A stretch of 64,000 bases of DNA from Hemiscyllium ocellatum. Its lineage: Eukaryota. The notes beneath the pieces were generated by a model, which worked only from the letters and a program-made list of their open reading frames with translations, searched no databases and had not been told where the DNA came from. Location: NCBI RefSeq assembly GCF_020745735.1, contig NC_083409.1, forward strand, positions 16,738,303 to 16,802,302, in the 5' to 3' direction. The position numbers and the translations under genes were made by a program. Positions 27,838 through 56,800 of this stretch are shown piece after piece. The stretch's first letter is position 1; each line of letters begins with the position of its first letter.

Positions 27838-27843
27838 AATAAA
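27838..27843 (+). terminator. Polyadenylation signal of the kappa transcript
   Basis: AATAAA about 490 nt after the stop, followed by a GT/T-rich tract; retained in the inverted copy at 42211-42216. Confidence 0.75.
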
Positions 27844-28390
27844 GGTGAAGATTCAGTCTCTGTCTCTGTCTGCTTTGGAAATAACAGACCTCTACCCCAC
27901 CCCCAAACCCCTCAGTTGATTGGCTGTATTTCAGCAGATCCTTGTCACAATTGGTTACTTGGCCTGTCAATCAATTTCAATCATCAATCGTTTTCAAATG
28001 ATCCCTTTGATCAGGGATTTGTGTAGGTTACAAGATTCCAAAAAGAACAGAAACTGAAAGTTGTTGGGACTCAATAAGTACAATCTGATGCATTCCCTCT
28101 TCACTCGGTTGGTCCCGGCCCAGCTGATGGGATCGAACTGTGCAATCTCTGCTGTATGTCAGACAGCCGATGAAACAATCATCAGCCATTCACAGACATT
28201 GCCGGCTCTGTCTCTCTTGGTGTGATTGTTCAACTTAATGCTACCTGTAGGTGTCTCTCTGGGCGTGGGCGTGTTACTCAGAGACACACTCACAGGCAGC
28301 GCTCAGTAACGCACCCACATTCGGAGACACCTTCAGGCAGCATGGAGTGTGAGCATGTGACTCAGTGCAGCCTGTCTCTCAGAATGCGTG

Positions 28391-28508: not shown

Positions 28509-28892
28509 GAGGTCTGTGTCTCCGAGCGATGGATTGAGAATGGGCTTTGTGCTGGGGATTGAAGATCAGGCTTTAATCTTCTCAAATCATGAATGAAAAA
28601 AGGTTAATCTGATTCAGACTGAGAGGCAGCTCATTCAGATAGCCAAAGTTAAAAAAACATACAACATCAGGTTATAGTCAGCAGGTTTATTTGGAAGTAA
28701 AAGCATTCAGAGTGCTGCCCCTTCATTAGGTAGCTGGAGGGGCAGGATCATTGGGCACAGAATTTATAGCAAATTCAGATAGCAGCTGAAAAAAGTGAAT
28801 TCTGAGAGTGTATTCTCAGTAAGGGAGGGATTTCAGAGGCAGTGGGCACTGTGCTCTCATATGTGTTGCCGAAGTCCGAGGGGATTTTCTGG

Positions 28893-29022
28893 AGGAGAAA
28901 GTGAGGACTGCAGATGCTGGAGATCAGAGCTGAAAATGTGTTGCAGGAAAAGCGCAGCAGGTCAGGCAGCATCCGAGGAACAGGAGAATAGACGTTTCGA
29001 GCATAAACCCTTCTTCAGGAAT
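28893..29022 (-). mobile_element. Penelope-like pLTR fragment (similar copies at about 8650-8830, 10140-10280, 35510-35628, 38440-38580)
   Basis: Reverse complement reads cctgaagaagggtttatgctcgaaacgtc...tgctgcctgacctgctg...ccagcatctgcagtcctcacttt. Confidence 0.75.
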
Positions 29023-32650: not shown

Positions 32651-35600
32651 CCTGTCATGAATGGAACCAGCAGGAAAAGGTTAGATCATCAAGTGTCAGG
32701 GCCATCAACAAATGGGAATGGGGCATGCTACAGACAGTTGCATTGAGACAGCCAATCACAAAGAGAAGACCAAACTGGAAATAAAACACTAATACACAGT
32801 GGACGGAATTTAATGTAAGAAAGTGTGAGACCATGCACTTGGGTCGGAATAATCTAAAGGTTGACTATTATTTAAATGTGAGAGATTCCAACAAAGTGCA
32901 GTACAGAGTGATCTGGGTAGTATTGTGCATGAAACACAGAAAGTTCGTGCTGGTACAGCAAGGAATTGAGAAGGCAATTGAATTTTCACCTTTATTGCTG
33001 GGGGTTGGAATTTAAAAGTAGAGAAATCCTGATAAAACTATCAAGGGTGTTAGTGAGCCTGCATTTGGAGTATTGTGTGCAATTTTGGTCCCTGTATTTA
33101 AGAAAGGATGGTCAGCTATTTGAGGCTTCATCCTGCTCCTATTTCTCATGGCCTTGTGTGCTCCAGTGTCCTTCCCTCACAGCAGAGCTGGTTGGAGCAT
33201 GCCTGCAGTAACAGCCTCCAGTCTCTGGGTGGTGCTGCCAAATGATCTGCCTTGCCCAGGCTGTCACAGTTCCCACATCAAAACAATGTCTGGACTTCGG
33301 AAGTATTCCATTGGCTGTAAAATATTTCCAAACATCCTAAGTTCAAGGAACGTATAACTCACATATAATTCTCTCTCCTTTTATATTTTATCTCCATGTC
33401 TCCCAGCTGTCGCCTGAAAACATTACACACTTGTGTAAAATCTAGAATGGATCATGAATCTCTGGGAGAACTTAATCTATGACAACACTGGGATTAATGA
33501 CCACCTCCTGAGTGGGCTATGAGGGGGAAGGTCAACAGCAGTCTCACTGGAACTTGATTTGGGTTATCTTGATCGTGATCCAGTCAGTCAGTGTTTTTGT
33601 CTGGGTCCAGATAGTACAGACCAACCTCGGACCCTGTAATCTGATTGAAGTGAAGGATTAGCTGTGCTGGGCTTTCACACATGGCTCACATACATAGTGA
33701 AGCAGGGATTACACATTTCATGAGGGTAAATGAGACCCACACACTGTCTCCAAGAGAGTGGGGACAGGAACAGTAATATTCTCATACAAAAAAGGATGGT
33801 AAAAATGATAACCCACAAAGAGAGAGGAGACAGGAAAAGTGACGCTCCCCAGAGACAGGCGAACAGTAACTGTGTGCTCCCCACTTTCTTGTTGTGACAT
33901 ATGTCGTTGGGAAATTGGTTTGGTTTATATTTTCTCAATTGTATTTAGGTTTGATGAGGTGATTCGGGAACAAGGATTCCAATTCAATATTTTGTGTAGC
34001 AGCAGATCTACTGAAGGACATGTTTTCATTTGGAGTTTGCCCAGGTTTCTGTCCAGGCTGATACAGCATGATCTACCAGAGCTGCTCCTATTGGGCTAAA
34101 CCATCACACACCAGGGAGTCTGATGGGCACTTTCTCTTTGTGCCAGAAAAGGGAAGGATTTGCTTTTCCTGCAATGGCAGCCAAAGAAATTAGTCAGTGG
34201 ATGTTGTTCCAGCTGACTATAATGTTCTGATGTTCATGATGGGATTAACCTCGACAGTTCCCACTTGCCTTTACCCCGACAGTGGAACAGGAAGTCACCA
34301 TGCAGTGGTCTCCTGGCTCACACTGAGAAACCAAGTTGATGGTATAACTGCAGAGAGCAAGGCAATGGCTTGGACTCACCGAACAACCAGAGGCTTTGGC
34401 CAGTAACTGGGTCACAGGCAAATGGAGTGTTGTGTAAACTTCCAGTGTCTCGGGAACAAACACAACTATTGAGCTACAAAACTGAACAGGATATTTTTAT
34501 GACAAATTGGCATTCCAAAATTAAATAAAAACACAATATGCAATAAAACCTGAGTACAATCTAATTTCAGAGACTACAGCATTTTCTTCGAAAGCTGTAT
34601 GATAATGAGATGAGAATTCAAACAGCCACCCACTCCCTCAAACAGTGTTGAAGTTGCATTGTCCTCATCATAATAAGTTTGCAAGCTTCTTAATAACCCA
34701 AAAGGGGAGCGAAACATTGCAAACTGTATTAACACGAGTGAGGATCCATTAAAAACTAGGACCATGATGTTAAATGCTCCCAGCCATAAATAACACTGAT
34801 GCATTCACATAATTAGAGGGTTAAATGATGTTAAAAAGTCTGCCAACCACTTTCATGAAGATGGAGTATTTAAAACTCAAGAGGTATTGATGACTTTTTT
34901 TCAGTTCTATGCAAGGAAGCAGCAGTTGACATATGAACTCCAACAAACTCATGATAACAGGCATTGAATACAGAGCAGGCTCCTGAGAGAGAGAAAAAAA
35001 ATCAACAGCAGAGATCTGTCCAGTGCTGGGAACATTTTAGACAAGACACCTTGTTGCCAGCAAGTTACTGCAGCTTGAAAACTCCAGTACGGTCAGAAAG
35101 AGAAAAAGGACAATGTACAGATTGTTGAACAGGCCCCTACACCTGGGCCTGAGGCAGGAGCCCAAGCTCCAACACACTGGCCTCACTTCACACCAACCTT
35201 CACACAGTGCGGGGTCATGAACTCCAACCATCAATTCTGAGACTGGGACGGAGGGAGCAGGGGTAATTGTAGAAGAGTCAATAGAGAGTAAAGCAAGATG
35301 GAGAGGGTGTGTTGGAAAGGGGTTAGAGGAGGAAATATACTTTGTGCCACTCAGTACTGACATTGTCTATGTGTATCACAGAATGAACAAAACAGCACAC
35401 TGTGAAGACAAACAAAAGTCACATCAAAGTACTTTTCTTCTCACAGGGGATATTTTCATTGTGGTGTGATAAGTACCCTGCTTCTAGAGCTGTACACTCT
35501 ATGTGTCTGGAGGAGAAAGTGAGGACTGCAGATGCTGGAGATCAGAGCTGAAAATGTGTTGCTGGAAAAGCGCAGCAGGTCAGGCAGCATCTAATGAGCA

Positions 35601-35760
35601 GGAGAATCGACGTTGCCTTCTTCAGGAACTTCATGTGTCTCTACAGATTGAGCCTGTTAGTTCCAAGCAGAGTCCCACTTTACTGATCAGGGACAGTGAA
35701 GCAGCTGCCCTCTAGTGGCGAGAGAGCGCTTGCACTGCTGCTGAGGATTATGGGTAAAGT
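32650..35760. repeat. Segmental duplication block A, left arm (inverted copy at 48250-51840)
   Basis: Collinear reverse-complement matches of non-TE sequence, e.g. 33430-33720 vs 49620-49885, 33840-34200 vs 49060-49420, 34570-34810 vs 48815-49050, 35090-35480 vs 48410-48800. Confidence 0.93.
35705..35718 (-). promoter_or_regulatory. CTCF motif, reverse orientation
   Basis: CTGCCCTCTAGTGG is the reverse complement of CCACTAGAGGGCAG, matching the CTCF core CCASYAGRKGGCRS at every position. Confidence 0.75.
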
Positions 35761-38069
35761 CCCCTTCCATTCGCGCCCACACAAACCAGCAGCCACTTCA
35801 GCTGCTTTATTGAAAACCACAAACTTTAAGGCATTGTTCTTTCAACGGTGGAACTGGACACACGATCATACGAATTAGGGACAAAAATGAAGGAGATTCA
35901 TCCTCTTGAGCCTGCTCCCCATGGCTGACCTGATTATTCCACATTTTTGCCTCACTCCAATAGATTTATGATAAACAATAGCTATCTACTTCTTCACTAC
36001 CAGCATTCAGAGGTTTCATTTCTATGTTTGAAGAAGATTTCCAAAGATCTATGACCTTAAGAAAGAAAGAAAACCTGCTTATCACGGTCTTAAATGAGGG
36101 AACTTATTTTAGTTTTATAGTCTCCCTGAAAAGGAAGCATTCTTTTCACATCCACGCTGTATTCTGTGCTCATGTTGATATGGCATCTGCTTTAATCAGC
36201 TGCTCTCCCATGAGAACAGCTGCCTATCCTGCCACCTTCAGTGACTGATGCACATAAACATCCAGGTCCTACTGCCTCTACACCCAACCATATTTGTACC
36301 CATTATTTTGTTTGTCTCTCCACGTTTTCCTTCCAAAATGAATCAGTGACAGCTCTTTCCATGAAATTCTATCCACAACCATCTGCTCATCCCAATCACT
36401 TATATATATATATTGAAGTTAGACACTATCTTCTTCATGAGCCATAATACATCCAAGTTTCATACCCTCAGCAAATTTTGAAATTATGCCTTGTACACTC
36501 AGGTTAACATAGATTTAACTATTTAAATAGTTTTTAAAGTGAACTATTTTATAAACTATTGTAAATTAAACCTCAAATTTATTGCCCATCTCTAGTTACT
36601 CGGACTGAGTTCTGAGCCAGATTATGGGGCCGTTAAGAATGAATCACGTCACTATGGGACTGGAGTCACAGACCGGGTGATGACTGGGTTCCCTTGTCCA
36701 AACTACATTCATGAACATGACATTGAGTTGCATGGGTTTTTCTTGGTTCAGATCCCAGCGCCTTCCTTCCCAGATATTACATGGCTCACTACTGCCCTCT
36801 CCAGGACAATTTGGGAAGGGCAACAAATAACTGCCACTTTTGTGCCCGCCCATCCCAGGAGAAATCAAAATAAACAAGGTACTTGTTTCTTGATAATAAC
36901 CCAGTGACAGTGAAGGAACAGGGATATATTTCTTAGTCAGGATGATGAATGGTTTGGGGAAAACCCTGCAGGTGATGGTGTTTCCATGTGTGTACTATTT
37001 TAAAAGGCATTTAATAACCTGAAAAAGAGGAATAATAAAGGGAAAGTAATGTGAGAAAGCATTCGACTGGATGGTAATGGATTAATTATTGCGGTGACGT
37101 TTTGGGCAGAGTTGGCTGTTCTTGTCCTGCAGCAACATTCTCCATGGTAACACTTCATTGCATTCCAAAAGAACACGTTAAAACCTCAAAACTCTGACCT
37201 TGCACAAAGACAGTATGAATTATTGACATATTTTATGATTTTTTAAAGTATCAGCCTTGGCTAAGTTGTTAGAACTCCTTCCATGGAGTCAGAAAGGTTT
37301 GGCTTCAGTCCACTCTAAGGTGAGTCAACAACAATCTCACCCATCAGTGACAGAACTGCCGGGGAGCTCCTTTTGGTTCCTGGGGAGGTCCCCAGTTGGG
37401 AGCGAGCAGAGCAATGCTTGTTGGAGACAAGGCTCTCACTGGAGACCTTGGCTTATTATGGAATCCCTGATCAAATGCAACTAAAAGCAGATGTGGGTCA
37501 TGAGAGGGGTGGCAGTTTAACATGAGGACATCATCTGAAGCTTGGTCCATTGATTAGACAAATTGTGGGACAGCCAAGCCGATTTAATCCCTGAGCTGCC
37601 ATATAATCAGGATAGATTCAAGAATTTAGGGGTCAATTGGCTCCTCAGTCAAGTTGATATCGTCTGATGGTAGCTGAGAATTTCAGTTCATTACTTCTAT
37701 CCTGATATTCATTGGGAGAGATTTGCTGCCATTGGGGGCATTGAAATGGGCCACTGGAATGATTAAGTTTGCCTAGAGTCATGTTTCCAACTGTACTAAA
37801 TCTAGCCCAAAGCGTAAAAATCAAAACTGATGTTTCATTTGCAAAACTGAGAGAAGATGTGTAGGTTGGGGATTGGCCGTGCTAAATTACTCATTATGTC
37901 CAAGAGATGCGCAGGCTAGCAAATGGAAAATGCCATGGAAAACGCAGGGTTACAGGGATTGGGTAGGGGAGGTGTGGGTCTGGGTGGGATAGTCTTCAAA
38001 GGGTCGGTATGAGCTTGCTGGGCTGTGTGGCCTGCTTCCACACTGAAGGGATTCCTCGATTCTATGATT

Positions 38070-38390
38070 CTATGAAGGACAGAACAGGATCTCGACAGTG
38101 GAGAGGGGGTATTCTCATGTTCAAAAATTCTTATAGAAAGGAACACAAAAAATACATATTAACCATCAGAGCATACAAACTGAGCGGCAAAATGACACAT
38201 TCTCCAGTCATATACCAAGTACAGAAAGGAAATCAGGAAAAATATTTTGATGCAGTTACGGAATTTAATGATGAATGATGTATAAACTGAATGCTCCATT
38301 CAAAAAAGGACAGAATGATTTTTAGAATTTCAACAGGTCTAAAGCAAAAGAGGAAATCAGGATCAAATAGTCATTTGAGAATCTGGAACT
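38070..38390 (+). repeat. Third, more diverged copy of part of block B (direct vs 61900-62200; inverted vs 44690-44990)
   Basis: Shared ggcaaaatgacacattct...gaaatcaggaaaaatattttgat...ggatcaaatagtcatttgagaat. Confidence 0.85.
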
Positions 38391-39384
38391 TGAGTGAGAG
38401 AAAGTCCTTTTTATGAAAACATTTCATTTTGCCTTGCTTTCTCTCCATGGATGATGCCTGACCCGCTGGGATCTCCAGTCTACATGGTGTTTGCCTTTGC
38501 TGTGCTATTTCTCGCAAATTGCCCTGATGTGTGCAAGACAAAAGCTTCGACAAAATGTCTCTTTTTTTCAGCAACACTCAAATCCAGATCAGTCTGGAGA
38601 GAAAGCAGGGCCATGGAATCATCTTTCCCTGCAGGGAGGGAGGGAGGGGGTGTGTGTGGAATCTCCCATGGGCAGGGTTCTCCTGGCTGCCACCACATCA
38701 GGAAGGCTGGAGCTTGATGATCGAGCTGAATGGACAGGGCTCGCTCTCACAGTCCTCAGGGCCATGGAGCCTCTTGAGATGGGAGCATCTACTTGGTGTC
38801 AGGGCAGACAATGACATTGCAGTGGGATTGGAAATGTGACAACTCGACACTCGATGTTGCACAATGGCTGCAGTGACTCTTCCTCTCTGCCAGATCCCTT
38901 CAGGAGTGAACGTGGATGTACAGAATAGCTGAACACCTTGGTTTTTGAAGAAGGCATGTGCAATGGAACATTATTCTCCAGCTGACTGTCACCAGCTTGG
39001 TGCTAGAAAAGGTTCCTTTATTCATTGAGCTGAGAGCCTTGCTCCTGACCCAACAGATTGGTGTTGAGTGGAGTTTCAGGAGATAAAGAGAGGCTGAGGA
39101 GGGAATGAATGAGCAAGTGAATGTATCTGCTTCTCAAATTTCCCAGCAACAATGAGAGCTCAGGGTTAAGACACGAATGAGAAAGGGTGAAGCGTTGAAG
39201 AAATCTTTCACACAGAGCGTGTGTACGAGTGGGTACAGAGAAAAGACCATTCAATTGTTTTGAACTTACAAATTAGTGGCTGAATTAGGTCATTCAAACC
39301 TTCAAAATTCTCGACCAATGAATAGGACCATGGCTGATGTGATTTTGCTTCCAATGTCACATTCTCATCCATCACAGAATGGTG

Positions 39385-40535
39385 AATGTATAACAAAAGT
39401 GGACAGAAAAGCCAGATCCTGAACTACAACAGCAACCACCCAAATACACACAGGAGAAGCTGCATTAGGCCCCTGTTCAATAGGGCTACAACACACTGCA
39501 GCACTCCCGACCTGCGAAGAGAAGAACACTTCTACAAAGTCTTTACCAAGAACAGATTTTCCTGCAACTTTATCCACAGATACCTAACAGACAACGCGAT
39601 GAGGACATGCTACAACCTAACTCCTAGCCACGCTACCGTATATAAACAAATGCCACTGAACTGACAGCCAGACTTGTCCAATCATGGAACAGTGGCTCAG
39701 TAGTTAACACTGTTGCCTCACAGTGGCATGGATCCGATTTCAATTCCCTCATCAAGAAACTGTCTGTCTGGAGTTTGCATATTCTCCCCGTGTCTGCAAT
39801 GATTTCCTCCGGGTGCTCCGGTTTCCTCCAACAATCCAAAGATGTGCAAGTCAGGTGAATTGGCCATGCTAAATTGCCCCTAGTGCTAGGTGCATTAGTC
39901 GAGGTCAGTATTGGGTAGGGGACTGTGTCTGGGTGGGTTATCTTTGGAGGATCGGTGTGGACTTGTTGGGCCGGAGGGCCTGTTTCCATACTGTAGGGAA
40001 TCTAATCACTCATAAACTGCCCAGAAACTGCTAGCCACGCTCAGACAACAACGCATGAGAACAAAAGACCCAAAACCAATCATGTGAAAGACAAATGTAG
40101 TTTACAAGATTCCATGCAAAGCCTGCATGAAACACACAGGACACACAGCCAGACAACTAGCCATCCACATCCATGAACACCAAAGAGCCACTAAACCCCA
40201 TGAGCAGCTGTCCCGAGTAGCTATACACACAGATGACAAGGACCACAAATTCGATTGGGACAACACTATGATCATAGGACAAGCTCAACAGAGGACAGCC
40301 AGAGAATTTCTAGAACCATGGGCTCCATCAATAAACACATTGACCGAGACCCAGTAGACCGACCACTGAAATGAACATTCCCAAACCAGCAACCGGAAAC
40401 AGCAGGAATGGAACCAAATACATTCCAGAAGACACAGCACAACAGCACTTCACAGGAAGCTCCAAAGCTCTGAAGATGTCACCGAGACAGGGGACAAAAT
40501 GTCTACAAATCAACTCCCCAGCTCGGTGAGCATAC
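39385..40535 (+). mobile_element. Penelope-like element 3' part, interrupted by a V-SINE at about 39686-40008
   Basis: QILNYNSNHPNTHRRSCIRPLFNRATTHCST, then HTGHTARQLAIHIHEHQRA...FDWDNTMIIGQAQQRTAREFLE; decayed hammerhead at about 40467-40505. Confidence 0.85.
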
Positions 40536-41239
40536 CCACAACTACAGCAAGAGTGAGGGGTTTTCCTGTCCTACAGTGCTCTCCAAATCCTTACCTGCCC
40601 TCCTCATTGTCATACCCTCCTGCCCCTTATTACACATGGAATTGGACTGCCTGGTCCTGAGGATTATGACTTCCTTCTGGAACAAGATCTCCGGGTATCT
40701 CTTCACCTCCCTGATGTGTCACCAATTATTTCAACACAACCTCAAGTCCAAACACCCTGTGTGGGAGTTGTTGTAATTTATATATTCACTGCAGATGTAT
40801 TTAATCTGAGTCATTTTAATTTAATAAAGAAATATAGATCCCACTTACAAATGGAAGATATGGCTTCCTCGATTAATCCAGTAATTGTCTTCAGTATCTG
40901 AATTTAAATTTTCGTGCTTTTGATTTATTGACCTTCTCGAATGGAGGTATCCCGAAGCAGTACAAGACAACATGAGGATATAGACGGGCTGGGAGGGTCA
41001 GATGGGCTGATCAGTAACAAATGGAATTCATTCCGATAAATGTGAGTCAGTGGACTGAGCTCCCCCTGACCATGTGAGTGAGGTGAGGGCAGAGTGACAG
41101 CCCTTGACATCAAGGCCTCTTTGATGGTGTGTGGCATCAAGGAGCCTGCTAGTCCAGGGAAGGGATCAACATCTGGATCCTTCCAAGCAACTCCTGGGAA
41201 TTCTGTCATCCCAAACGGACACATCCTCCTCCTCAGTTC

Positions 41240-41510
41240 ACACAAACAGCAGCAAGTCAAGCACACTCTGTCCAAACTGGTTGGGGGAACTGACCTGAAC
41301 TCTCACAGCCCTGTGCCGTGCCCTGCTGAAAGATGGAGGGACTACTGGGGAACCCTTGGGGCAGACAGTTCCACCAATATTGTTGTTCTTTAAATGTGAA
41401 TGTGAACTTGTCCTGGTCCTCAGCCCTCCCTGGACCAGGGCACATTCAAAATGACCAACGGTGTAAAGACCCATTGCCAGTCCATCAGCAATGAGCCAAT
41501 CTGCTCTGAG
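41240..41510 (-). mobile_element. Endogenous retrovirus RT fragment
   Basis: QDKFTFTFKEQQYWWNCLPQGFPSSPSIF (retroviral FxF..QQYxWxxLPQGFxxSP) followed, after a frameshift, by QSVLDLLL where QYVDDLLL is expected. Confidence 0.75.
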
Positions 41511-42169
41511 CACTCCCTGAGTTAGCGCACTCCATTCTGTTCGGTTAGACTGCCAGAGAGCCCACCCTTACACTCCAGGGTTTTATTAGCCCTCCTACCA
41601 CAGAGTCCTCCCATGAACCTCTTCAGTTTGCTCTCCACTAGAGAGGGCTGGTCCCAGTGGTTTTGATGGATGCATCTGTGAGTGAGATATAATGAGATAT
41701 ATACATATATATAATATATATAGCTTGATATATTCCCTGTTCCCCACCCACACACGTATGGACACAGGCTCTTCCCCATTCATCATACACTATCAGGCAC
41801 AGGTATTCAGGATGGGTACTGCCCCTTCAGAGCACCACCATGGTGGATGGGGGGTTATGGAGTGAAAGGTACCCTCCCTACTCTGGGTTGGACCTTTCCC
41901 ATCTACACTCTGAGTTCAACTCACTCTCGGCTTCATTCTTTGATCTTTCCGAAGCCAACATACCTTTCTTCTCTTCCCCATTTATTGGGGAAGATTTTCT
42001 CAGGGCCCTGCATTCCTGCTGAAAGTGCCCCTTCTGTCCCTAGCTGTCGTATTGCCCTCCTGCTCCCAGGACCCCATTGCCCTCTCTATTCTCCCCCTCC
42101 TGTTCCGTGCCTTGATGGTGGAGGGTTTCAATTCACACACCCTTTCCCAGAGGCTTCAGCTCGGGCCAT

Positions 42170-42945
42170 CTCCAAAGCACACACGAGACAGAGACTGAAT
42201 CTTCTTCATCTTTATTCCCTTTTACAGATTGACATTGACAGAAAACAGTCAGCAATTAACAGCCCAGACAGAGGAAGCTGCACAAATTCACAGCCACAAT
42301 GGAGCTTGAGGAAAACGCTTGTGGAGATTTTCTCAATAGCATGAGAATCCTGTCCCTTTAAACAGTGACAAAACCTTTAGGTGGAACTGGTGGCTGAGCA
42401 GGAAGGAGATCTGGTTTACTGAAGCAGAGACTTCTGAGGTTCACATTGTTTTTATACAGCTCACAGTTTTCAATATCTTTGAAAGGTTATACTTGTTGTT
42501 GCAAGTTAACACTGTCCCCAACAAACAGTCTCCTGGACAGGGACAGAATAGGGTTATATGCAGAGTAAATCTCTATCCATACTGTTCCCACCAAAGACAC
42601 CTATGACAGGGACAGGATAAGAAACAGAATAAAGCTGTCTCCACACTGTCCTCGTCAATACTCCCAGGACAGGGACAGTACTGGGTTCTCAAAGTGTCAC
42701 AGTAACCTGCCTTAACCGTTGAACCTCAGAGTCTCCCAGAGGCCAGTCTCAAGAAGGAAGAGAGTTGAAATTCAGTGCTGACAATGACCTGTGTCCTTCC
42801 AGCTCAGCCCTGTTCTATTTAAAGTTGTGTCTCCTCTGTGGACTGTCTCAAACACTCTACACACATTCTGATCTCCTGATGCTCTTGCTGAGGGGAGCGG
42901 AGAGGGTCACATGGGTGAGGGCACAGGAGAAATGAGCGTTGGACT
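42170..42945 (-). pseudogene. IGKC: Inverted, 5'-truncated Ig kappa C fragment with 3'UTR and polyA signal
   Basis: 42945-42857 is 84/89 identical to 27260-27348 (SNAHFSCALTHVTLSAPLSKSIRRSECV-stop). 3'UTR homology runs to about 42170, with AATAAA at 42216-42211. The first ~80 codons, J and V are absent. Confidence 0.95.
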
Positions 42946-43351
42946 GGCAAAAGTATAATTTTGAACATTTGTATCCAATACCCAACAAACCGGATGTTTT
43001 TTAAATTTCTTTTTGATTGTGGACATTGAAGTCCCCCACCCAGAGTACATTCTGTGCCCTGACCACCCTCAGAGCTTCATCCAAGTGCTGTTCAACATGG
43101 AGGAGAGACTGACTCATCAGTCGAGGGCGGACAGAACATGGTCATCAGCCAGAGGTTTCACAGAATCAGAGAATCATACAGTGTAGAAGAGGTCCCTCAT
43201 CTGATCATGTCTGTCCCACCAAGGCAAAACTAAATCTACTCTCCATCCACTTTCCAGAACTGGGCCCAACGTATTGAATGTTCGGATATTTCAGGCGCTC
43301 ATCCAGGTATTTTTTAAAAGATATATTTTTAAAATATTGACCAGGACACCA

Positions 43352-46322
43352 TGGGGATCTGCTCTGCTCTTCTCATAGTGTCATGGCATCTTCTACTGGC
43401 CCCTGAGAGGGCAGACATCAGAACATTCAGTCTGAAAAATGGTCCCTGAGCACTGAACCTCTAACAGTGTTGCACTCCCTCAGTATTGACACAACAGCAG
43501 TGCAGCACTCCCTCAGCATGAACTATCTGACAGGATGGCACTCCCACAGTATTGACTTTCTGACAGTGTGGCATTCCCTCAGTACGAACCCTCTGGCAGT
43601 GCAGTACTCCCTCAGCACTCACCCTCTGACAGTGCAGCTCTCCCTCAGTAATCACCCTCTGACAGTGCAGCACTCCCTCAGTACTGACCCAACGTTAGTG
43701 CAACACTCCCTCAGTACTGAACCTACAATAGTGTGGAACTCCCTCAGTACTGACCCTCTGACAGTGTGGCAGTCCCTCAGTACTGGCTCTCTGACAGTGC
43801 TGCATCCCATCAGCGCTGCACTGCACTCTCAGCCTGGATAATTTTCTTCAGTGATAGGATCATGTAAAGATGGAATCTCTACCATGTTGAAGCAGGCCAT
43901 TCACCCAAATAAGTTCACACCAGTCCTCCAAGGAACATCCCACCTAGATCCAAACCACGACACTATGCCTGTAACCCTGCATTTCCCAATGGCTCATCCA
44001 CCCAGTCTGCAACATTGTGAGTCTGAGGGGAGAGTGCTCCCCACTGAGACTAGGCTGACAACTCCCGGTCCAATAGCCTGCCTTGCTTCCCCATCCCAGG
44101 CCGCATTTGGAGGAATGAGACCATCTCTAGTTTCCCAGCTGTGCATTCAGGAGAAAGCTAACCACCGCCCTCTCCAGGATAGTTAGGGAAGGGCAATAAA
44201 CAGCAGACATATCAATGTCCTCCCCATCCCAGGAGTAATCAAAATAACTGATGGACAATTCAAACAATCAAACTGGTGGAAGGTGGTTCAATCATTCCAG
44301 TGATTAAATTTCACCTGGTAATTCCTGTATTAAGTTCAAGCTGAAGCTATCCTGGTCTCTGCTGAATTTAGACCAATTTTCATGTTCATTTCCATCTTCA
44401 TTCTTTCTCTCCAAACCGACCCTAACTTGAATGTTGCAAAAAACAAAACATTTTGTTGAAGCTTTTTGTCTTGTACTCATCAGGACAATTTACAAGAAAT
44501 GTCAAAGCAAAGGGAAACAATATTTAAACTGGCGTGTTCATAGTGACAACACCTCAGCCTGTCAGCACTTTCCTCATATGCAATATCAATGTCATGTTTT
44601 TCTCCTTTGATTGGTACTTTTACAATTATCCTGATGAAGGCAAAATGAAAAGCTGCTAAAAACCGGGCATTTTCAGGCCAGTTCAATATTCTCAAATGAC
44701 CATTTGGTCATAATTTGCTCTTTTGCTTCAGACCTGTTCAAATTCCAAGAAGTAATTCTGTCCCATTGTAAATGGAGGACCCAATTTACCAGAATTTACT
44801 AAATTCCAATCTCTGCATCAAAATAGTTTTCCTGATCTCCTTCCTGTACTTGGTGAATGACCGGAAAATGTGTCATTTTGCCTTTCTGTTTGTCGGTATT
44901 GACAGTAAATCTACATTTACTGTGTCGATTTTGTTAAGAAGTTTTGTTATCAGAATACCCTCCCTCTCTCCTCAAGATCCTGTTCTGGTGTTTCCCTGTA
45001 ACCTAGATCCCCTGTCCCTGTCCCATTCTGCATTGCCCCTCAAAGAAACCCATAACTATCCACCATATCCCAGATGTGACCGAACCATTCTTCAGTACAG
45101 CTGTCCTGGCCAATTTCCCCTCCGTCTCCTCACTCTCAATATTCATTCCAAAGTCCCATTGGCCTTTCCCATTTCTTTTATAGGACTTTCTTTCCCAATT
45201 TTAAGCATTTATGTTGCTCAACATCCTTTCTTGCCCACTGCAGTACATTGTTTACAATATGAGCTACACTTCATCCTTTAACGTTCTGAGTCATTACAAC
45301 CAGGAAAGCTCTCAATAGAAAAATTCAATTAATCCCATTGCCCTGCTCTATCCCAACAGCTTTAGTGCATTTATGGTGCATTCAATGACACCTGACACTT
45401 GTCTGTCTTACCCTCTTACACCCACTAATGGCTTTCTCTTGAGTTCTTCCTGACAAATTGCTGTTTACTGCAGTTTGGTGACACACTTTGGTAGCCGTTT
45501 GTTCGGTCTTTGTGTAATTCATTTTGTGCCTGATCCGTAGGGCACTCCACCTTGCAATTTAAAAATGCAGGCTCACCCATATCATGGCCGAGGCTCCAGT
45601 CTTTCAAAGAAATGAGTTCAAGCCTCACCAGTTTAATCATTTGAATTGTACATCATTTATTTTGATTTCTCCTGGGATGGGGCAAGCTTCGATTTGTCTA
45701 TTTGTTGTCCTTCCCTAATTGTCCTGGAGAGGGCGGTGGTGAGCAATGTCAAATCCAGAACATAGAACATAGAACATAGACCATGACAGCGCAGTACGGG
45801 CCCTTCAGCCCTCGATGTTGTGCCGCCCTATGGAACCAATCTAAAGCCCTTCTATCCTATACTATTCCATTTTCATCCATATGTTTATCCCGTGTCCATT
45901 TAAATGCCCTTAGTGTTGGCGAGTCTGCTCCTGTTGCAGGCTGTGCATTCCATGCCCCTACTAGTCACTGAGTAAATAACTACTTCTGACATCTCTCCTA
46001 TATCTATCACCCCTCAATTTAAACCTATGTCCCCTCAGCATCTGAGGAAAAAGGCTCTCACTATCCACCCTATCTAACCTTGTGATTATCTTAGTATGTC
46101 TCAATTAAGACAACTCTCAACCTTCTTCTCTCTAACAAAACAGCCACAAGTCCCTCATCCTTCCCTCATAAGGCCTTCCCTCCGTGCCAGGCAACATCCT
46201 CGTATATTTCCTCTGAACCCTTAAATTCTCACATCCTTTTTTTAAATGCCGTGACCACAACTGTATGCAATACAGTATGCAATTGCGGCCACACCAGAGT
46301 TTTGTACAGCTGCAGCATGACC
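43352..46322. repeat. Segmental duplication block B, left arm (inverted copy at 60268-64000, running off the window)
   Basis: 43352-43430 vs 63920-64000; shared minisatellite; 44700-45600 vs 61430-62220; shared CR1 3' end 45770-46322 vs 60268-60815. Confidence 0.95.
43455..43830 (+). repeat. About 33-bp minisatellite (cactccctcagtactgaccctctgacagtg)n; inverted, longer copy at 63430-63900
   Basis: About 11 units on the left and about 14 on the right, read directly. Confidence 0.9.
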
Positions 46323-47799
46323 ACAGAGACATGATTCATTCTTCACGTCTCCATGATCTGCCTCAGAAAATATCTCAGTTCTAGCAGTTGGAGATGGGCA
46401 ATAAATTTGAAGCTTCCCAATGACATGAACACCCTGAGGAGGACTAATGCAGCTATTTGCTGTCTGCCTTTGAGGTTCTGAGACACCACATTCTCACTGT
46501 TATGGGTTTCTAATCCTCTCAACTTTATTAACTAGATGATAGCAACATGTGAAGTGTTTTTGTTTTGAACTGTCAGGTCTCTTTTCCCACGCCTCTCTCC
46601 TCTCCACCTCCCTCCAAGCCTTTCTCCAGATGTTTCCCGTGACAGCCTCGCTGTGCAGAGTGAGAGCTCCCTGTGTTCTCTGAGGCCTCACTCTGTCTTG
46701 TATCTGTCTCCTCTCCAACGTAACACAAAAAACATGTTTCTAAAACCCTGTTGAGATGAAAAGAGAGCTGAGAAAACGACATCAACCATAATTGACTTGG
46801 TCTTGTTAAAGAAAATAATGTTTGTTTTGAAATTGTATTTCTGTCAGTGAGTGACAAAGGAAAGATGGGGGTCCAGGGTTGCTGCAGCCTCTGCCAGAAC
46901 ATCGGACCCAGGAGCAGGAGCAGGCCTTTTGGGAGCTGCTGCGCCAATGGGGAAGATCACTGCTCATCTGGTTATGGTCTCACCTGCACTTTCTGCAGTT
47001 ATCCTAAACTGCCTTATTCATCAAAAACCTGTCTACCTCAACCTTGAGTATACTTAATTACCCAACCTCCATTCCCACGTAGAGAAGAGAATTCCACAGA
47101 CTGTCAAACCTCAGCATGAAAACCCCTCCTTCCTTTTAAACGGGAGACTGTTTTGTGTTAAACTGTCCCTCCAGTTCTCGTCTGCCCTATAACAGGATCC
47201 ACCCTCTCAGTCTCCAGCCTGTCATGTCACCTTCAGATCAGAAACTGTTAATGAGAGAGAACAGGTTGCAAAAGCGAGGCATTTCCACGGAAAATAATTA
47301 ACAATGTTAATGTCCATATTTTTTCCATTGTCGAGTCCAAAACAAGGGGATTGATAAAATTAGAATTGGGAATGATTTCAGGAAGAAGTCTTTGTGACAA
47401 AGAGTGGTGGAAATCTGGAACTCTAGGTCTGACAAAACTGTCAAGGTCGGGGTTCAATGTTCATTCGCTCAACAAGGTAAGGGTTACAGAATTAAGCGGG
47501 AATGTGTTCTAGGTGACGGACTTTAGGCTCAATCTACAAATTTATTATCTTTTATGTGTGAGCCAAGTCCTGCGTGCTCTTTAAATAAAGCAATATGAAA
47601 AATATCTAATCTTACAGTTTTAGTTTTATTCTATCAGTAAGTGGATAAAGTATACAGAGCTCTGGGTCTAAACCTTCCTGTCCCTGACAAACTACTCAGT
47701 CAGTCAGTTCAGAAAGAACAAAAAAACCTATATCTGTCCCTGACACAGTCTTTTATACCATAGAAAACATCATACCATCACTCAAGTGAAGTTGTCTTC

Positions 47800-48117
47800 T
47801 AATTGGCTGTTGCTCCGACTCCATTCCCCGCCTCCTCGCATTTCCGGCTGTCCGACCTCACGTGACCTTCCCTTTTCGGAGACAAAGGACCACCATGTGG
47901 CCTCCTTTCGAGCGCGAAACGGCAGTCTCGCCCACTTCCGGGGCGCGAAACGGCCGATCACGTGACCTCCCGGAGCGCGAAACAGGGAGACCACGTGACC
48001 GCGCCCGCATCTCGGAGCATCACGTGATCATCCTCTGCGCGTGCATCAGAGGACCACGTGACCTCCGAGCATCGAGGACACGCCCCTCAGACTCGACAAT
48101 TTAGTTTCCAGGTAAGT
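47800..48117 (+). promoter_or_regulatory. CpG-island, housekeeping-type promoter with a probable non-coding first exon
   Basis: The only CpG-dense non-TE stretch. ATTGG 47802; CACGTG at 47859, 47959, 47992, 48021, 48055; GCGCGAAA (E2F) at 47912, 47943, 47975; ACTTCCGG about 47934; CAG|GTAAGT donor at 48112. Confidence 0.75.
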
Positions 48118-48296
48118 TTTTCACATATATATTTACATAGGTCAGCCATGGGCTGATTGACTGACTGGTGAACCAGACCGAAACAACTGATAACTCATTC
48201 CCACCGGAATCCACTGGAATGGCCGCTGTTTCGTTCAGATGCTCATGGCCCGGGACTTGACGCGTGGTTCTCAGCAGCGGTACCAGCACTCTATAG

Positions 48297-48310
48297 CCAC
48301 TAGAGGGCAG
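48297..48310 (+). promoter_or_regulatory. CTCF motif, forward orientation
   Basis: CCACTAGAGGGCAG, a full match to the CTCF core; paralog of 35705-35718. Confidence 0.75.
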
Positions 48311-51019
48311 CTGTTTCACTGTCCCTGAACAGAACAAATGAACTGGGGCCCTGCTCGGGTCAAACCAGTTCAATCTGTAGAAATGTGGAGAGAGAGAGGG
48401 AGAACAGCTTTCGAACCGGGATACTTATCACACCGCAGTGAAAATGTCCCCTGGGATATGATTGTCTTCACAGTGTGCAGTTTTGTTCATTCTGTGATTC
48501 ATGTAGACTATGTCAGTATTGAGTGACGCAAAGTATATTTTCTCCTCTAAACCCTTTCTAAAACACCCTCTCCATCTTGATTTACTCCTCATTGACTCTT
48601 CTATAATTGTCCCTGTTCCCTCACTCCGTCCTGATCCCAGAGGAATTGATGGCCAGAGTTCATGACCCCGCACTGTGTGAAGGTTGGTGTCAAGTGAGGC
48701 CAGTGTGTTGGAGCTTGGATTTCTGCTTCAGGCCCAGGTGTAGGGGCCTGTTCAACAATCTGCACATTGTCCTTTTTCCTCTTTCTGATCACAGACTTTC
48801 TAATATTGTTTGACAAGCTAATGATGTAAATCCATCAGTGTTGTTTATGGCTGGGATCATTTAACATCATGGTCCTAGTTTTTCATGGACCCTCACACGT
48901 GATAACACAGTTTGCAATGTTTCCCTCCCCTTACGTGTTACGAAGAGCTTTGCAAACATGTTTTAATGAGGAAAGTGTGTCTTCAACACCATGTGACGGA
49001 GTGGGTGGGTGTTTGAATTCTCATCCTACTATCTCCAGCTTTCAAGGAAAACTACCTCCACTGACCCATCTCTTTGGCCGCCATTGCAGTAAAAGCAAAT
49101 CTCTCCCTTTGCCGGCACAAAGAGAAAGTGCCCGTCAGATTCCCTCATGTGTGATGGTTTAGCTCAATAGGAGCAGCACTGGGAGATCATGCTGTATCAG
49201 CCTGGACAGAAACCTGGGCAAGCTCCAAATGAAAGGATGACCTTCAGTGGATCTGCTGCTACAGGAAATGTAGAATTGGAATACTTATTACTGAATCAAC
49301 TCATCAAACCCAAATACAACTGAGAACATATAAACCAAGACAATTTCCCAGGCCCTACATCACAACACAGGAAGAAAATGGAGAACAGGCAGTGACTGTC
49401 CCCTGCCTCTCACGAGTGTCACTGTAACTGTCCCCTCTCTCTCAGGGGAGTGTAGCTGTTCCTGTCCCCTCCCTCACTGGGGGCCATACCATTTTGAGCA
49501 TCCTTTCTGTCTGAGGATGTTACTATTCCTGTCTCCACAACTCTCTCGGTATCGGCGTGAGGGCGTCACAGCCACCCAGTTTGTTAGTTCAATTTACTCT
49601 CTTGTGAAATGGGTAATCCCTGCTTCACTATACTGATCCATGTGTTAATACCCAGCACAGCTCACTCTTCATCTCAATCAGATCACAGGGTCTAAGGTTG
49701 GTCAGTACTGTCTGGCCCCAGAACAATAACACTGACTGACTGGAGATAACCCAGATCAAGTCTCAGTGAGAGTGTTATTGACCTTCACACTCAAAGCCCA
49801 TCGAGGAGGTGGTTGTTAGTCTCAAATGTTGCCACAGGATAAGTTTTCCCAGAGATTCATAATTCATTCTAGATTTTAAACAAGAGAGGGATGTTGTGAG
49901 GAAACAGATGGGAAGGCATGGAAGGGAAACAAAAACACCGTTCATGAGCTGAGAATGTTCGAAGATGTTTTCCAGACAATGGAATATTTTCAAAGTCTAG
50001 ACATTGTTGTAATGTGGGAGCTGTGACAGCTCATTTACTCTCAGCAGGCTCCCACAATAACAGCAAGTTATTGACCAGGATATCGGGGGGTAGGACACCG
50101 GAGTGGAGAATGGGACAGGCTGGCAAATAAACCCCAAGTAACCAGTGAGGCCTGAGTAGTGGGCTGGGTGGGATGGAGAAGCCAAAGTAGAGGGACTTCT
50201 TAAAATTCTTTCATGGTATGTGGGGGTCACTGCCTGGGCCAGAATTTACTCCCCATCACTTGTTGCCGTGCTGAAGTTGGTGGTGAACTGCCTTCTTGAA
50301 CCGTTGCAATCCATGTGCTGTAGGCCTCCCCACATAATACTAAGGGAGGAAATTCCAGAATTTTGACCCAGCGACAGTGAAGGAGCTGTGATGTATTTCC
50401 AAGTCAGGATGGGCAGTGGCCTGGATGGACACTTGCAGAGGATGGTGTCCCACGTATCTGTTGCCCTTGTCCTTCTAGATGGTAGTGGTCATTGGTTTGG
50501 AAGGTAATACCTTAAGGAACCTTGGTGAGTTGGTAGTGATGGTACAGCAGGTAGTGGTGGTACTGCGAGTAGTGGTGGTACAGCTGGCTAAAAATGATCA
50601 CCTCTCCACAGTCAGTGGTCATTCCCTTTCCTTTTGTATCAGTGAAACGTGTCAATGACTAACTCCTGGTCAGTAACAGCAACAACAACAACTTGTATTG
50701 ATCTAGCATTTTTAATGTAGGAACCATCACACAGTTTTTGTGATGATGAACAGAATGAGACAAAGAAGTGAGAGGGGTTTGTGGAGGAAATCCCTGTGCT
50801 GAGGGCTGGGCGACTGAAGGCACAGCTGCCAGTCATGAGGGGGAAGGCTAGGTTGGAGAGTTTGGGAGATGGGGGAGGGATTGAGGATAACCGAGTGGTC
50901 CATTATATCACCTCCCCCACCTGCTGCAGCAGGAGACTGGGGAGAGGAATTGGGAGGCTGGACAAGGCACCACCCAGAGGCTGGAGGCTGTTACTGCAGG
51001 CAGGCTCCAAACCAGTTCG

Positions 51020-51212
51020 AGTAAAAAATGAGGTCTGCAGATGCTGGAGATCACAGCTGAAAATGTGTTGCTGGTCAAAGCACAGCAGGCCAGGCAGCAT
51101 CTCAGGAGTAGAGAATTCGACGTTTTGAGAAGGGCTTATGCTCGAAACGTCGAATTCTCTATTCCTGAGATGCTGCCTGGCCTGCTGTGCTTTGACCAGC
51201 AACACATTTTCA
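51020..51212. mobile_element. Fold-back Penelope-like insertion with 16-bp target-site duplication
   Basis: 75-bp inverted arms 51055-51129 and 51141-51215 (2 mismatches); GCTCCAAACCAGTTCG at 51004-51019 and 51213-51228. Confidence 0.85.
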
Positions 51213-51443
51213 GCTCCAAACCAGTTCGGCTGTGAGAGAACGAGACTGGAGAACACAAGGACATGGAAAATAGAAGCAGGAGGAGGACTCCAATGCCAGT
51301 ACATTCTTTGTTAAACACAGGGATCAATACTGCACACTGTACTCCACATGCAGACTCACTAACATCCTGTACAGTTATAACAAGTTTTCTCTACGTTAAT
51401 ATTCCAACTCCCAGCAATAAAGGCTCCTATTCAATTCGCCTTC

Positions 51444-51479
51444 ATTCCTGATGAAGGGCTTATGCTCGAAACGTCGAAT
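51444..51479 (+). ncRNA. Minimal type-I hammerhead ribozyme motif in a Penelope-like pLTR
   Basis: AUUC (stem I) - CUGAUGA - A - GGGC UUAU GCUC (stem II) - GAAA - palindromic ACGU - C (cleavage) - GAAU (stem I). Confidence 0.65.
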
Positions 51480-52000
51480 TCCCTATTCCTGAGATGCTGC
51501 CTGGCCTGCTGTGCTTTGACCAGCAACACATTTTCAGCAATTACTAGCTGTATCTGCACTAACTTTCTATGTTTCATACACAATAACATCCAGATCCCTC
51601 TGCATTGCACTTTGTTGGAATCTGTCTCCATTTAAATAATAATCTGCCATTTGATTATTACGACCAAAGTGCATGACCTTATACTTTCCAAATATAAACT
51701 CCATCTGCTGTGTATGAGTACTGTCTTATTTCTGTTTGGTCTTCTTTTCGTAATTGTCTGTCTCTGTGTACCATGTCCCATTCCCATTTGCTTACGGCCC
51801 AGAGACTTGGTTGTCCAGCCCTTTCCTGCTGGTTCCATTCAATATTGAACAGCTTCATCGAGACAACGTAGCCCAGCATGACATCCCCTCCTTCAACTGG
51901 GATTTTCCTTGCTGTCCTGTGATGGCACATTCGAGGCTCGGAGAGTTACTTCATGACTCGCTCCCAGACTCTGTGACAGAGGGAGGGGGTGGGAACAGAG

Positions 52001-52517
52001 GAAGATCCAGGCTCCATGATTGGGGTGTGAGGGGAGACCCAGGGCCCATGCTCCATGATTGGGGAGTGAGGGGGAGACCCAGGGCCCAGGCTCCATGATT
52101 GGGGAGTGAGGGGGAGACCCAGGGTCCAGGCTCTGTGATTGGGGAGTAAGGGGGAGACCCAGGGTCCAGGCTCTGTGACTGGGGAGTAAGGGGGATACCC
52201 AGGGTCCAGGCTGCATGACTGGGGAGTGAGGGGGGGACCCAGGGACCCGGCTCCCTGTCTGAGGAGTGAGGGGGAGACCAAGGGACCTGGCTCCATGACT
52301 GGGGAGTGAGGGTGACCCAGGGCCCAGGCTCCATGACTGGGGAGTAAGGGGTGACCCAGCGCCCAGGCTCTGTGACTGGGGACTGAGGGGGAGACCCAGG
52401 CCCAGGTTCCGTGACTGGAGAGTGAGGGGGAGACCCAGGGCCCATGCTCCGTGACTGGGGAGTAAGCGGTGACCCAGGCCCAGGCTCTGTGACTGGGGAC
52501 TGAGGGGGAGATCCAGG
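52001..52517 (+). repeat. G-rich 40-bp minisatellite, about 13 units
   Basis: Unit agggcccaggctccatgattggggagtgagggggagaccc, with a strict 40-bp period from 52041 to about 52300. Confidence 0.95.
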
Positions 52518-53852: not shown

Positions 53853-56800
53853 GCAGTTCGTGTTCACCATGGGGATGCAGACAGCTACCGCAGACGGGCA
53901 GGGCCAGTAGGAAATGGATACGGGTAACCTCAAAACCTGTTAAAAATGGGGATAAGAATTGCAAGCATTAATGTGCGCAGCATAAAATCTGCTGCGCGAT
54001 GTGTTTCTACGATGGCCTTCCTAGCCAAAGTCAAAGCCGACATCCTGTTTCTGCAGGAGTGTGGGATGCCGCACCTCAGAAGCTGCAGGAGATGGTCGAG
54101 CTTGTGGGCCCATGCACCATCAGTTTGGTCGGGGGCAACAACATCCGTTCCTCAGGCCTCGGGATCCTGTTGTGAGGAGGCAACTTCAACATCTCCGAGG
54201 TTAAGGAGGTGGTGGGCTGGCTCCTCCTAGTCGCTGATGTTACATACAGAAACGCTCCGGCGAGACTAATCAACATGTACACCCCAGCAGGTAATAGTGA
54301 ACGGTTGGCCGTCCTGCAGCAGCTTCCACTGTTACTGGCTACGTCCAGGCCAGTCATTCTGGCCGGAGACTTCAACTGTATCATTGATGCAGATGGACGA
54401 TCCAGCGGGGGGGACAGTAAACTGGACGCCACGTCCAGAGCCCTGATGGACACGGTAAAAATGCCAATCTGTACGACGTCTTCAGCACCCCTGCAGATAG
54501 AGCGCAGTGTAGGTACACCTGGTCACGGGCAGACGGGTCTATCCGCTCAAGGATAGATTACCTGTTTGTGTCCCGAACGCTCTTGGTCAGATCCACCGAC
54601 ATCAAGCCAGTGTTCTTCTCTGACCACTGCCTCCTGCTGGCCGACTGTCACCTACAGGACGAGCAGCAGGCGGGTAAGGGAACGTGGAAGCTGAATACAA
54701 AGCTGTTGGCCCCGGGAAACATTGAGGAGCTGAAGAGGGACTACGCAGGTTGGAGAACCGTGAAGCCCCTCTTTGAGTCCCCAGCGGACTGGTGGGAAAC
54801 AGTAAAATGAAACATCAAGAGGTTCTTCATCCTCAAAGGTGTTCAGGAGGTGAGAGAGAGGCAGGGAAAACTATCCCAGGTCCAGGAAAGTATGCAGAAC
54901 CTGCTCCTGCTGCAGACGATGGGGGTCGATGTCACAGAGGACCTCAAGGAGGTGAAGGGGCAGCAAACCTCCCTCTTTGCCTCGGAGGCCTCCAAGATAA
55001 TCTTCCAGTCCAGAGTCCGCTCCATGGAGCAGGACGAGACGTGCTCATGTTTCTTCTTCCAGAAGGTGCACAAAGAGAGCTCTGTGCTCAGCAGCCTGAA
55101 GGAAGAAGATGGCTCAGGAACATCATCTCAGGCTGATGTCATGAGGATCAGCAAATCCTTCTATGCCAGTCTGTATGACGCGAAGCCAACCGACAGCGCA
55201 GCCTTCCAGTCGTTCCTGTCCTCTATCACGGAGGTCTTAGACGACAGAACACCCGAGAGGCTGGACCAGCCGCTATCTCTGGATGAGCTGACCAAGGCCC
55301 TCAATTTCCTTGAAAAGAATAAAACTCCCGGAAGTGACGGGTTACTGGTCGATCTCTATACTGCTCTTTGGGACTTGATTGGCCAGGACCTGCTGGAGGT
55401 GGATGTCGGTATGCTTCGGGCAGGTACCATAGTGAATCCATGAGGAAAGGCATCATCACCCTCATCTACAAGTGGAAGGGGGAGAGGGAGGAAATTAGAA
55501 ATTGGAGACCAATCTCACTGTTAAAAACAGACGACAAAATCTTGTCAAAGGTCATCGCCAACTGGGTCAGGACTGCTCTGGGATCGGTGATCCACCCTGA
55601 CCAAACCTGTACTGGGAAGGAGGATCGCTGAGAGTCTCGCACTCCTCAGGAATACGATTGCCTACGTGCGGGACAGAGGGTTGGTCAGCCTGGACCAGGA
55701 GAAAGTCTTTGACAGGATATTGATGCATATATGAGGAATGTCCTCTCCAAAATGGGCTTTGGGGAGGGAATTGGTAATTGGATCAGACTGCTCTACACCA
55801 ACATTGTCAGTGCAGTCTCAATCAATGGGTGGGAATCAGATAGCTTCCCTGTAAGATATGGAGTCAGGCAGGGCTGCCCCCTCTCACCCACCTTGTTTGT
55901 GTGCTGCATAGAGCCATTTGCTGAATCCATCAGGAAGGATGCTAGCCTGAGAGGGGTGACTATTCCTGGCAACGGGGTCCTGCAGGTTAAGGTCTCCCAG
56001 TACATGGATGCCGCTTTCTGCTCACATCCGCTGTCCGTGCACAGACTCATGTGCATCCGTAACTAGTTCGAATGGGCCTCAGGGACCAAGGTAAACCAAG
56101 GCAAGAGCTCTTCAGGAACTGAGCCGACCAATCCTCTATCCTCTTCACCGTCAGGACTGACTACTTGACGGTGCTGTGTATTTGGTTCGGTGGGGCTGGG
56201 TACCGTGCCCCAAGACCTGGGAGAAGCGGATCAGGAGGATGAGACAGAAACTGGGCAGATGGAAGCAACGGTTGCTCTCCATCGCCAGGAAAAAAAACCT
56301 GGTCACCGAGTGTGAGGTACTCTCAGTGTTGTTATATGTGGCATGGTCTGGCCTATCCCCAGAACCTGTTCCGCCGCAGTTCCCTGGGCCATCTTCCACT
56401 TCATGTGGTGATCAAAGATGGAACGGGTCCGTAGAGATACAATATACAAAGACCTGGGCAATGAGGGAAAAAAACATGCCCAATGCCACCCTCACCCTGA
56501 TGGCCATCTTTGTGTGTGGCTGCATCAAGCTGTGCGTGGATCCCTGGTACGCAAACACCAAGTGTCACTACGTACTGAGATTCTACCTGTCCCTGGTGTT
56601 GCGAAGGATGGACCTGGCCTCGCTGCCGTGGAATGTTCAAAGTAGTTGGACCGTTCCGTACCACCTGTCCTTCGTGGAGAGGTTTATGAAGAAAAACACC
56701 TTTGACCACAAGTCCATCAGGAAGTGGTCAGCACGTAGTGTCCTTGAGACCCTTTGGGAAAAGGAGAGAGCGGATCCTATCGAGCGGTTCCCTGAGCAGA

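Follow-up and report, generated by a model that had tools for sequence, protein, structure and literature searches.

In the mouse immunoglobulin (Ig) heavy chain locus Igh, ten CTCF-binding elements at the 3' end (3'Igh CBEs) are convergent to the CBEs on the variable (V) side, and they reinforce the recombination centre as an impediment to loop extrusion (PMC10293834). A second known arrangement is the divergent pair of CTCF sites, as found at boundaries of topologically associating domains (TADs) and in the CBE1/CBE2 pair of IGCR1. Signatures of loop extrusion were reported in the little skate, where they depend on CTCF, and also in lamprey (bioRxiv 10.64898/2026.10.19.759930), and the machinery is therefore plausible in sharks. 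In shark IgH, the Ig heavy chain, rearrangement is confined to within a minilocus (PMC2435157). No paper on CTCF at shark Ig clusters was found in the library searched. Here, we analysed a 64,000-nucleotide stretch of the genome of the shark Hemiscyllium ocellatum (contig NC_083409.1, positions 16,738,303 to 16,802,302; hereafter the window, within which all positions are given), which contains a kappa-type Ig cluster and, in the 3' flank of this cluster, a candidate CTCF-type site (site A) that has a second copy (site B) further to the right. Our best explanation, to which we assign a probability of about 60%, is that one ancestral near-consensus CTCF-type site in the 3' flank of a kappa-type cluster was duplicated in inverted orientation, and that site A serves as a cluster-facing 3' extrusion barrier of some kappa clusters.

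Site A resembles the mouse 3'Igh CBEs in that it is located downstream of the constant (C) region and is oriented back to the part of the cluster with the V and joining (J) segments; in the mouse, the elements were proposed to bring loop extrusion to a halt at the 3' border of the locus (PMC10293834). On the other hand, the mouse elements are ten in number, clustered, with proven binding and tested deletions, whereas the shark has one strong predicted site, known here from its sequence. An additional 16-bit site of the same orientation is present in the shark 1.1 kb beyond site A, in sequence that is repeated in the window. The shark also differs in having no convergent partners on the V side and in the small size of the minicluster (~12 kb). 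Taken as a pair, sites A and B are similar to the divergent CTCF pairs of TAD boundaries and to IGCR1 CBE1/CBE2, being two strong motifs that point apart at a distance of 12.6 kb. Unlike those pairs, however, the shark pair is a by-product of an inverted duplication, and the interval between its members contains a dead C-exon fragment, transposon debris, a CpG island and further CTCF-like motifs.

Site A occupies 35703-35721 on the minus strand (core 35705-35718), and site B, the paralogous copy, occupies 48294-48312 on the plus strand (core 48297-48310), so that A faces left to the V-J-C cluster and B faces right into its own arm of the duplication. The 14-mer CCACTAGAGGGCAG that forms both cores occurs exactly twice in the 64 kb, and no third copy was found in the window even when up to two mismatches were allowed. 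Together with one flanking base, the 14-mer fits the 15-nt degenerate CTCF consensus CCASYAGRKGGCRSY perfectly at both sites, and these two were the only perfect matches in 64 kb, where 0.02 were expected from dinucleotide-preserving shuffles. Each site scored 19.8 bits (the maximum possible being 27.1) with an approximate version of the CTCF count matrix JASPAR MA0139.1. The motif core contains no CpG, and the 33-bp segments around the two cores (35687-35719 and 48296-48328) are identical at 32 of 33 positions, with a single A/G difference. The two cores, their lack of CpG and the 32/33 identity had been noted in an earlier reading of this DNA (the original prediction), whose positions and strands of the 14-mer proved exact and unique in the window; its 32/33 identity was reproduced on recomputation, its CpG-free core was confirmed, and its statement that site A points back to the V-J-C cluster agrees with the minus-strand position 3' of the C exon. 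We consider the call of a strong CTCF-type motif sound, and given the closeness to the consensus and the CpG-free core, the predicted site is probably bound by CTCF.

The two sites are carried by the arms of an inverted duplication, which was delimited by self-comparison and global alignment. Arm A extends over 32658-35810 on the plus strand and arm B over 48214-51841 on the minus strand; the arms are ~3.2-3.6 kb long, differ by large indels, and are 83.1% identical over 1738 ungapped columns. In the global alignment, motifs A and B occupy identical columns, ~100 bp away from where the homology stops on the inner side, indicating that they are paralogous copies of one ancestral site and are not independent of each other. 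Since the two copies of an asymmetric motif on an inverted duplication are necessarily either convergent or divergent, the orientation of A and B is a by-product and no signature in its own right. The original prediction had taken the divergent pair as the signature of a boundary; the orientation is indeed divergent, but it is the automatic outcome of the duplication. The same prediction held that the site duplicates with Ig clusters, and it was in fact copied together with Ig 3'-flank sequence.

The alignment shows the first part of our explanation, in which an old inverted segmental duplication copied the ancestral site and left copies that now point apart. If bound by CTCF, site A would block cohesin loop extrusion on the 3' side of the cluster that it faces, in the manner of the mouse 3'Igh CTCF elements, and would limit extrusion from the V-J-C unit, and with it the reach of enhancers or the tracking of RAG, into neighbouring DNA. 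Its role would lie in stopping the outward spread of activity and not in enabling V-J joining, a role that fits because shark IgH rearranges only inside a minilocus (PMC2435157). The element would belong to some kappa clusters rather than to a loop pair that packages every minilocus.

The cluster that site A faces is the one intact, unrearranged kappa-type cluster of the window, lying on the plus strand with a length of ~12 kb and consisting of V with a 12-bp-spacer recombination signal, J with a 23-bp-spacer signal, and C. The V exon (15644-15969, plus strand; assigned from its translation and its signal) ends in a recombination signal at 15942-15969, composed of the heptamer CACAGTG (15942-15948), a 12-bp spacer and the nonamer CCAAAAACC (15961-15969). 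Light chains of several sharks, among them epaulette, nurse and bamboo sharks, match the V protein at 83-91% identity, and the majority of them bear the name kappa. The J segment (16336-16409, plus strand) starts with a signal at 16336-16374, in which the nonamer GGTTTTTGT (16336-16344) is followed by a 23-bp spacer and the heptamer CACTGTG (16368-16374), and its coding part (16375-16409) is followed by a GTAAGT donor. The C exon is held in an open frame at 26998-27345 (plus strand), whose translation shares 77-83% identity with the best two Ig C1-set matches, the protein search having given four matches in total. Site A lies 3' of this exon, 8.36 kb from the C stop codon, on the opposite strand and facing the cluster. 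About half of this interval resembles transposon sequence, including an element at ~30.0-32.4 kb with a GIY-YIG-like motif, which we take to be Penelope-like, an assignment that Pfam did not confirm. Note that shark-like Ig C or V domains (P0001, P0002 and P0118), 77-83% identical to those of the window, appear in database entries of Aeromonas veronii and Salmonella enterica, where their contigs measure 299-990 bp; they presumably represent contaminating reads in bacterial assemblies.

The layout of the window, the clusters of a related species and the identity between the arms each supply points that weigh against site A as a barrier. A matrix scan of the 64 kb gave 13 sites of at least 11 bits, where 5.8 were expected, and 6 sites of at least 15 bits, where 0.65 were expected. 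No CTCF-type site of at least 11 bits was found in 1-24500 on either strand, and therefore no forward convergent partner exists within 15.5 kb upstream of V. The J-C intron contains the sole forward site to the left of site A (25627, 14.4 bits). Only ~420 bp separate V from J, so that joining within the cluster needs no loop. In addition, no V, J or C was found in the 15.7 kb to the right of arm B. A search for public ChIP-type runs containing this DNA listed none.

Other kappa clusters were compared in Chiloscyllium punctatum only, which provided one complete kappa cluster (L001) and two V-J pieces (L002 and L003). The V, the J-C intron, the C and the first 0.6 kb of the 3' flank of L001 align to the window. 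Within 10 kb on either side of L001, however, neither a CTCF-type site nor homology to the arms was found (n = 1 cluster), and this too counts against the barrier. In L001, V and J are fused in the germline (10440-10570) without recombination signals, the sequence reading YYCMQDYSVPQTLSFGKGTKLQLS; such germline fusion of V and J is known in sharks (PMC2193156). Being joined in the germline, L001 never needs RAG and is therefore a poor test of RAG confinement, and as a sample of one its lack of the element shows only that the element is not universal. No forward CTCF-type site was found upstream of V in L002 or L003, and the 10 kb that precede V contain no CTCF-type site in L001 or in L002. The matrix scan bears out sites A and B themselves and goes against the forward partner upstream of V for which the original prediction had suggested a scan, which is missing from the window, L001, L002 and L003.

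These results bear most directly on the full model of the original prediction, in which every shark Ig minilocus is packaged in its own CTCF loop and divergent pairs form boundaries that confine RAG and enhancers. The orientation of site A would suit the right-hand anchor of such a loop, the restriction of shark IgH rearrangement to a minilocus would be accounted for (PMC2435157), and divergent CTCF sites are typical of domain boundaries (PMC7422557). However, a loop per minilocus is disfavoured by the empty 15.5 kb upstream of V (no forward site of at least 11 bits in 1-24500), by the lack of a site 10 kb upstream of V in L001 and L002 and 10 kb downstream of C in L001, and by arm B, which has no cluster in the window and whose divergent site follows from the inverted duplication. 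The convergent partner expected of a loop boundary was not found for the A/B pair, and the possible partners of site B, at 54625 and 60840, lie in a long interspersed nuclear element (LINE) and in window-repeated sequence, respectively. We therefore regard this general model as improbable, and the barrier at the 3' end of some clusters is the form in which we retain the idea.

The identity between the arms was examined in windows of alignment columns. Among the 33-column windows, 145 of 1706 (8.5%) were identical at 32 or more positions, and these windows form 8 islands, compared with 3.9 expected if the differences were evenly spread; seven islands of this level thus exist besides the site, some of them longer than the island of the site. 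For the 14-column windows, 11% were identical at all 14 columns. At the site, exact identity extends over at most 18 bases, a run that ranks ninth, the maximum of the arms being 38 bases at 34037-34074. The identity at the site is unexceptional for the arms, a further point against the proposed barrier, and the view that the identity implies selection could not be upheld, as 8.5% (33-mer) and 11% (core) of the arm windows equal the site. The longest near-identity islands of the arms are at 34024-34079 and 35102-35225, with exact runs of 38 and 35 bases and 93% identity over 136 bp, and both are conserved above the CTCF-type site.

The local picture differs in part from that of the whole arms. 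By Fisher test, the 33-bp segment departs from the remaining arm with p = 0.016 and from the surrounding 170 bp (69% identical) with p = 0.0003, the limits of the segment having been picked post hoc. Within the last 170 bp of the arms, where conservation is poor, no island of high identity exists apart from the site. Accordingly, the statement of the original prediction that the adjacent sequence has diverged holds for these 170 bp but not for the arms as a whole, with their seven comparable islands, and its inference of selection, which it had tied to an identity significantly above the arm average, is not cleanly borne out; the smaller p value depends on the post hoc limits. Identity also depends on CpG status, CpG columns being identical at 48% and non-CpG columns at 85%, and the 33-bp segment touches CpG in one column only, at its extreme edge. 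At the non-CpG rate, the probability of a core identical at 14 of 14 columns is 0.10 arm-wide and 0.012 locally. Among the variants listed for four runs of three species, no well-supported one falls in 35674-35726, and gaps of that length are common elsewhere in the list. Together, the site appears as a small identity island in the least conserved end of the arms, which is suggestive but falls far short of the extreme value that an inference of selection from only two copies would demand.

A neutral relic would explain much of this pattern. Specifically, the motif might have arisen by chance or be a leftover that was duplicated as part of the arm and, owing to its shortness and lack of CpG, persisted in both copies, being unbound or without effect on the Ig cluster. 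The frequency of equally good windows (11% perfect at 14 columns, 8.5% at 32/33 or better) and the seven other islands agree with such a relic, as do the low identity of CpG columns (48% versus 85%) together with the near absence of CpG from the 33-bp segment, the missing partner upstream of V and the lack of the element in L001. A relic is less easily reconciled with a perfect match to CCASYAGRKGGCRSY, expected 0.02 times per 64 kb, or with the position of the site as a lone island of high identity in the final 170 bp of the arms (local p = 0.0003). Taken together, we consider a neutral relic doubtful, though a serious possibility.

The surroundings of site A were further compared among relatives, using 34600-36100 and the contigs of four public runs of three organisms (the source, organism A, and the relatives B and C) at a likeness of at least 80%. 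These contigs covered the stretch throughout, and a given letter was present in 1 to ~19 distinct contigs depending on the place, indicating that the stretch around site A is a multi-copy sequence common to three related species. One contig of organism C spans 35634-35771 with ~90% likeness, 11 other letters and 7 gaps. This multi-copy presence is a point in favour of our explanation. We also considered that the site marks the edge of a repeated unit, and this was rejected, since contigs of all three species run beyond 35810 and reach 36100 or further; that the homology stops at 35810/48214 is therefore particular to arm B.

An insertion of ~132 bp at 35508-35640 is present in arm A only and corresponds to a gap in arm B. 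It is a very abundant short repeat of ~105-135 bp, further copies of which are located in the window at 28888-29022, 51015-51215, 51444-51558 and 59988-60187. In the three species, the contig depth summed over the repeat exceeds that of the flanks about a thousand-fold, although such depth gives no firm copy number. Some contigs of organisms B and C skip the repeat, and since it is also absent from arm B, it was inserted after the duplication. The repeat ends 47 bp short of the 33-bp segment, and the motif is therefore outside it.

Repeats are nevertheless a rich source of CTCF-like motifs in this window. Between sites A and B, motifs are located at 36790 (minus, 16.0 bits), 43384 (minus, 11.3 bits), 44163 (minus, 14.8 bits) and 45720 (plus, 16.3 bits), and to the right of site B at 54625 (minus, 20.9 bits), 60840 (minus, 18.8 bits) and 62543 (plus, 14.8 bits). 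A and B are thus not an isolated pair, as three weaker CTCF-like motifs lie between them in window-repeated sequence. One repeat family with the CTCF-like core GTCCTGGAGAGGGCGGTG accounts for 36790-36808, 44163-44181, 45720-45738, 60840-60858 and 62543-62561 (14.8-18.8 bits). The top-scoring motif of the window, 54625-54643 on the minus strand (20.9 bits), is part of a LINE, in which it separates the endonuclease (54209-54556) from the reverse transcriptase (55731-56066); this LINE, at 54.2-56.1 kb, was the only element recognized by Pfam. Because repeats supply so many CTCF-like motifs, pairs of such motifs in the H. ocellatum genome need care. The mouse repeat SINE B2 (a short interspersed nuclear element) carries CTCF sites, and by analogy the spread of repeats may have introduced CTCF-type motifs into the H. 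ocellatum genome.

It could accordingly be asked whether the motif of sites A and B was itself carried in by a transposable element, like that of mouse SINE B2. The GTCCTGGAGAGGGCGGTG family and the LINE site at 54625 give precedents within the window, and the distance from site A to a short repeat of very high abundance is 47 bp. This repeat, however, is found in arm A only and ends at 35640, while arm B keeps the site without it, and 1 to ~19 distinct contigs per letter in 34600-36100 is unlike a high-copy repeat. A search with Rfam found no family in the whole 64-kb window, and Pfam gave no match for four open reading frames of the arms. A transposon-borne origin of the motif thus seems very improbable.

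Site B also has a neighbour of its own. The segment 47800-48117, just outside arm B, is CpG-rich, with five CACGTGA boxes, several GCGCGAAAC modules and a consensus donor CAG|GTAAGT near 48110 on the plus strand, and it looks like a promoter with a non-coding first exon. Site B might belong to a gene with its start at this CpG island, as a promoter-proximal CTCF site within the first intron that is unrelated to Ig regulation; the donor, in which the CpG-rich stretch ends, precedes site B by ~185 bp and shares its orientation. This possibility is weakened by site A, which has no comparable CpG island, and by the position of the island outside the arm (the homology ends at 48214), from which it follows that the site is older than that neighbourhood. 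We regard a promoter-proximal origin of the site as unlikely, and the ancestral site of a kappa 3' flank is preferred. A protein search with the open frame spanning site B gave no match, and a survey of the arms for E-box, octamer, PU.1, EICE, RUNX, EBF and NF-kB motifs revealed nothing shared and telling.

Apart from the cluster, the window contains a single Ig piece, a truncated C exon located between sites A and B. It consists of the last 29 codons (42860-42946) and 3' flank, together 42168-42946 on the minus strand, and was recognized by tblastn (86% over 29 amino acids). At the DNA level, 42945-42168 is 89-90% identical to 27260-27882, including 0.6 kb of 3' flank. This exon and arm B lack collinearity, so that more than one rearrangement must have shaped the region. 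A third inverted pair, 43351-46325 and 60263-64000, is mostly 90-92% identical (~78-85% in its outermost part) and runs off the end of the window; this pair and the C-exon fragment suggest a larger palindrome whose right arm continues past 64000. Tandem arrays are also present, with a 33-bp unit at 43443-43805 and 63446-63908 and with a 40-bp unit at 51991-52511, the latter adjoining the outer end of arm B.

The window adds one candidate site of a known kind of element, and it sets limits on the idea, in that there was one ancestral site and not two, no partner lies upstream of V, and the element is not universal. The A/B pair does not demonstrate selective retention or a loop per antibody cluster. 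A broader proposal, which we put forward only as a rather unlikely one, is that a subset of shark kappa miniloci has a conserved cluster-facing 3' CTCF anchor, copied with the 3' flank, that stops extrusion, RAG tracking and enhancer reach and that would be a simple ancestral form of the tetrapod 3' CBE superanchor. How V(D)J joining and expression are confined to one of many shark Ig miniloci is a long-standing puzzle; if the explanation given here is true, CTCF anchors at the ends of clusters would be a testable part of the answer and would connect the shark loci with the CTCF-based organization of Igh and Igk in the mouse.

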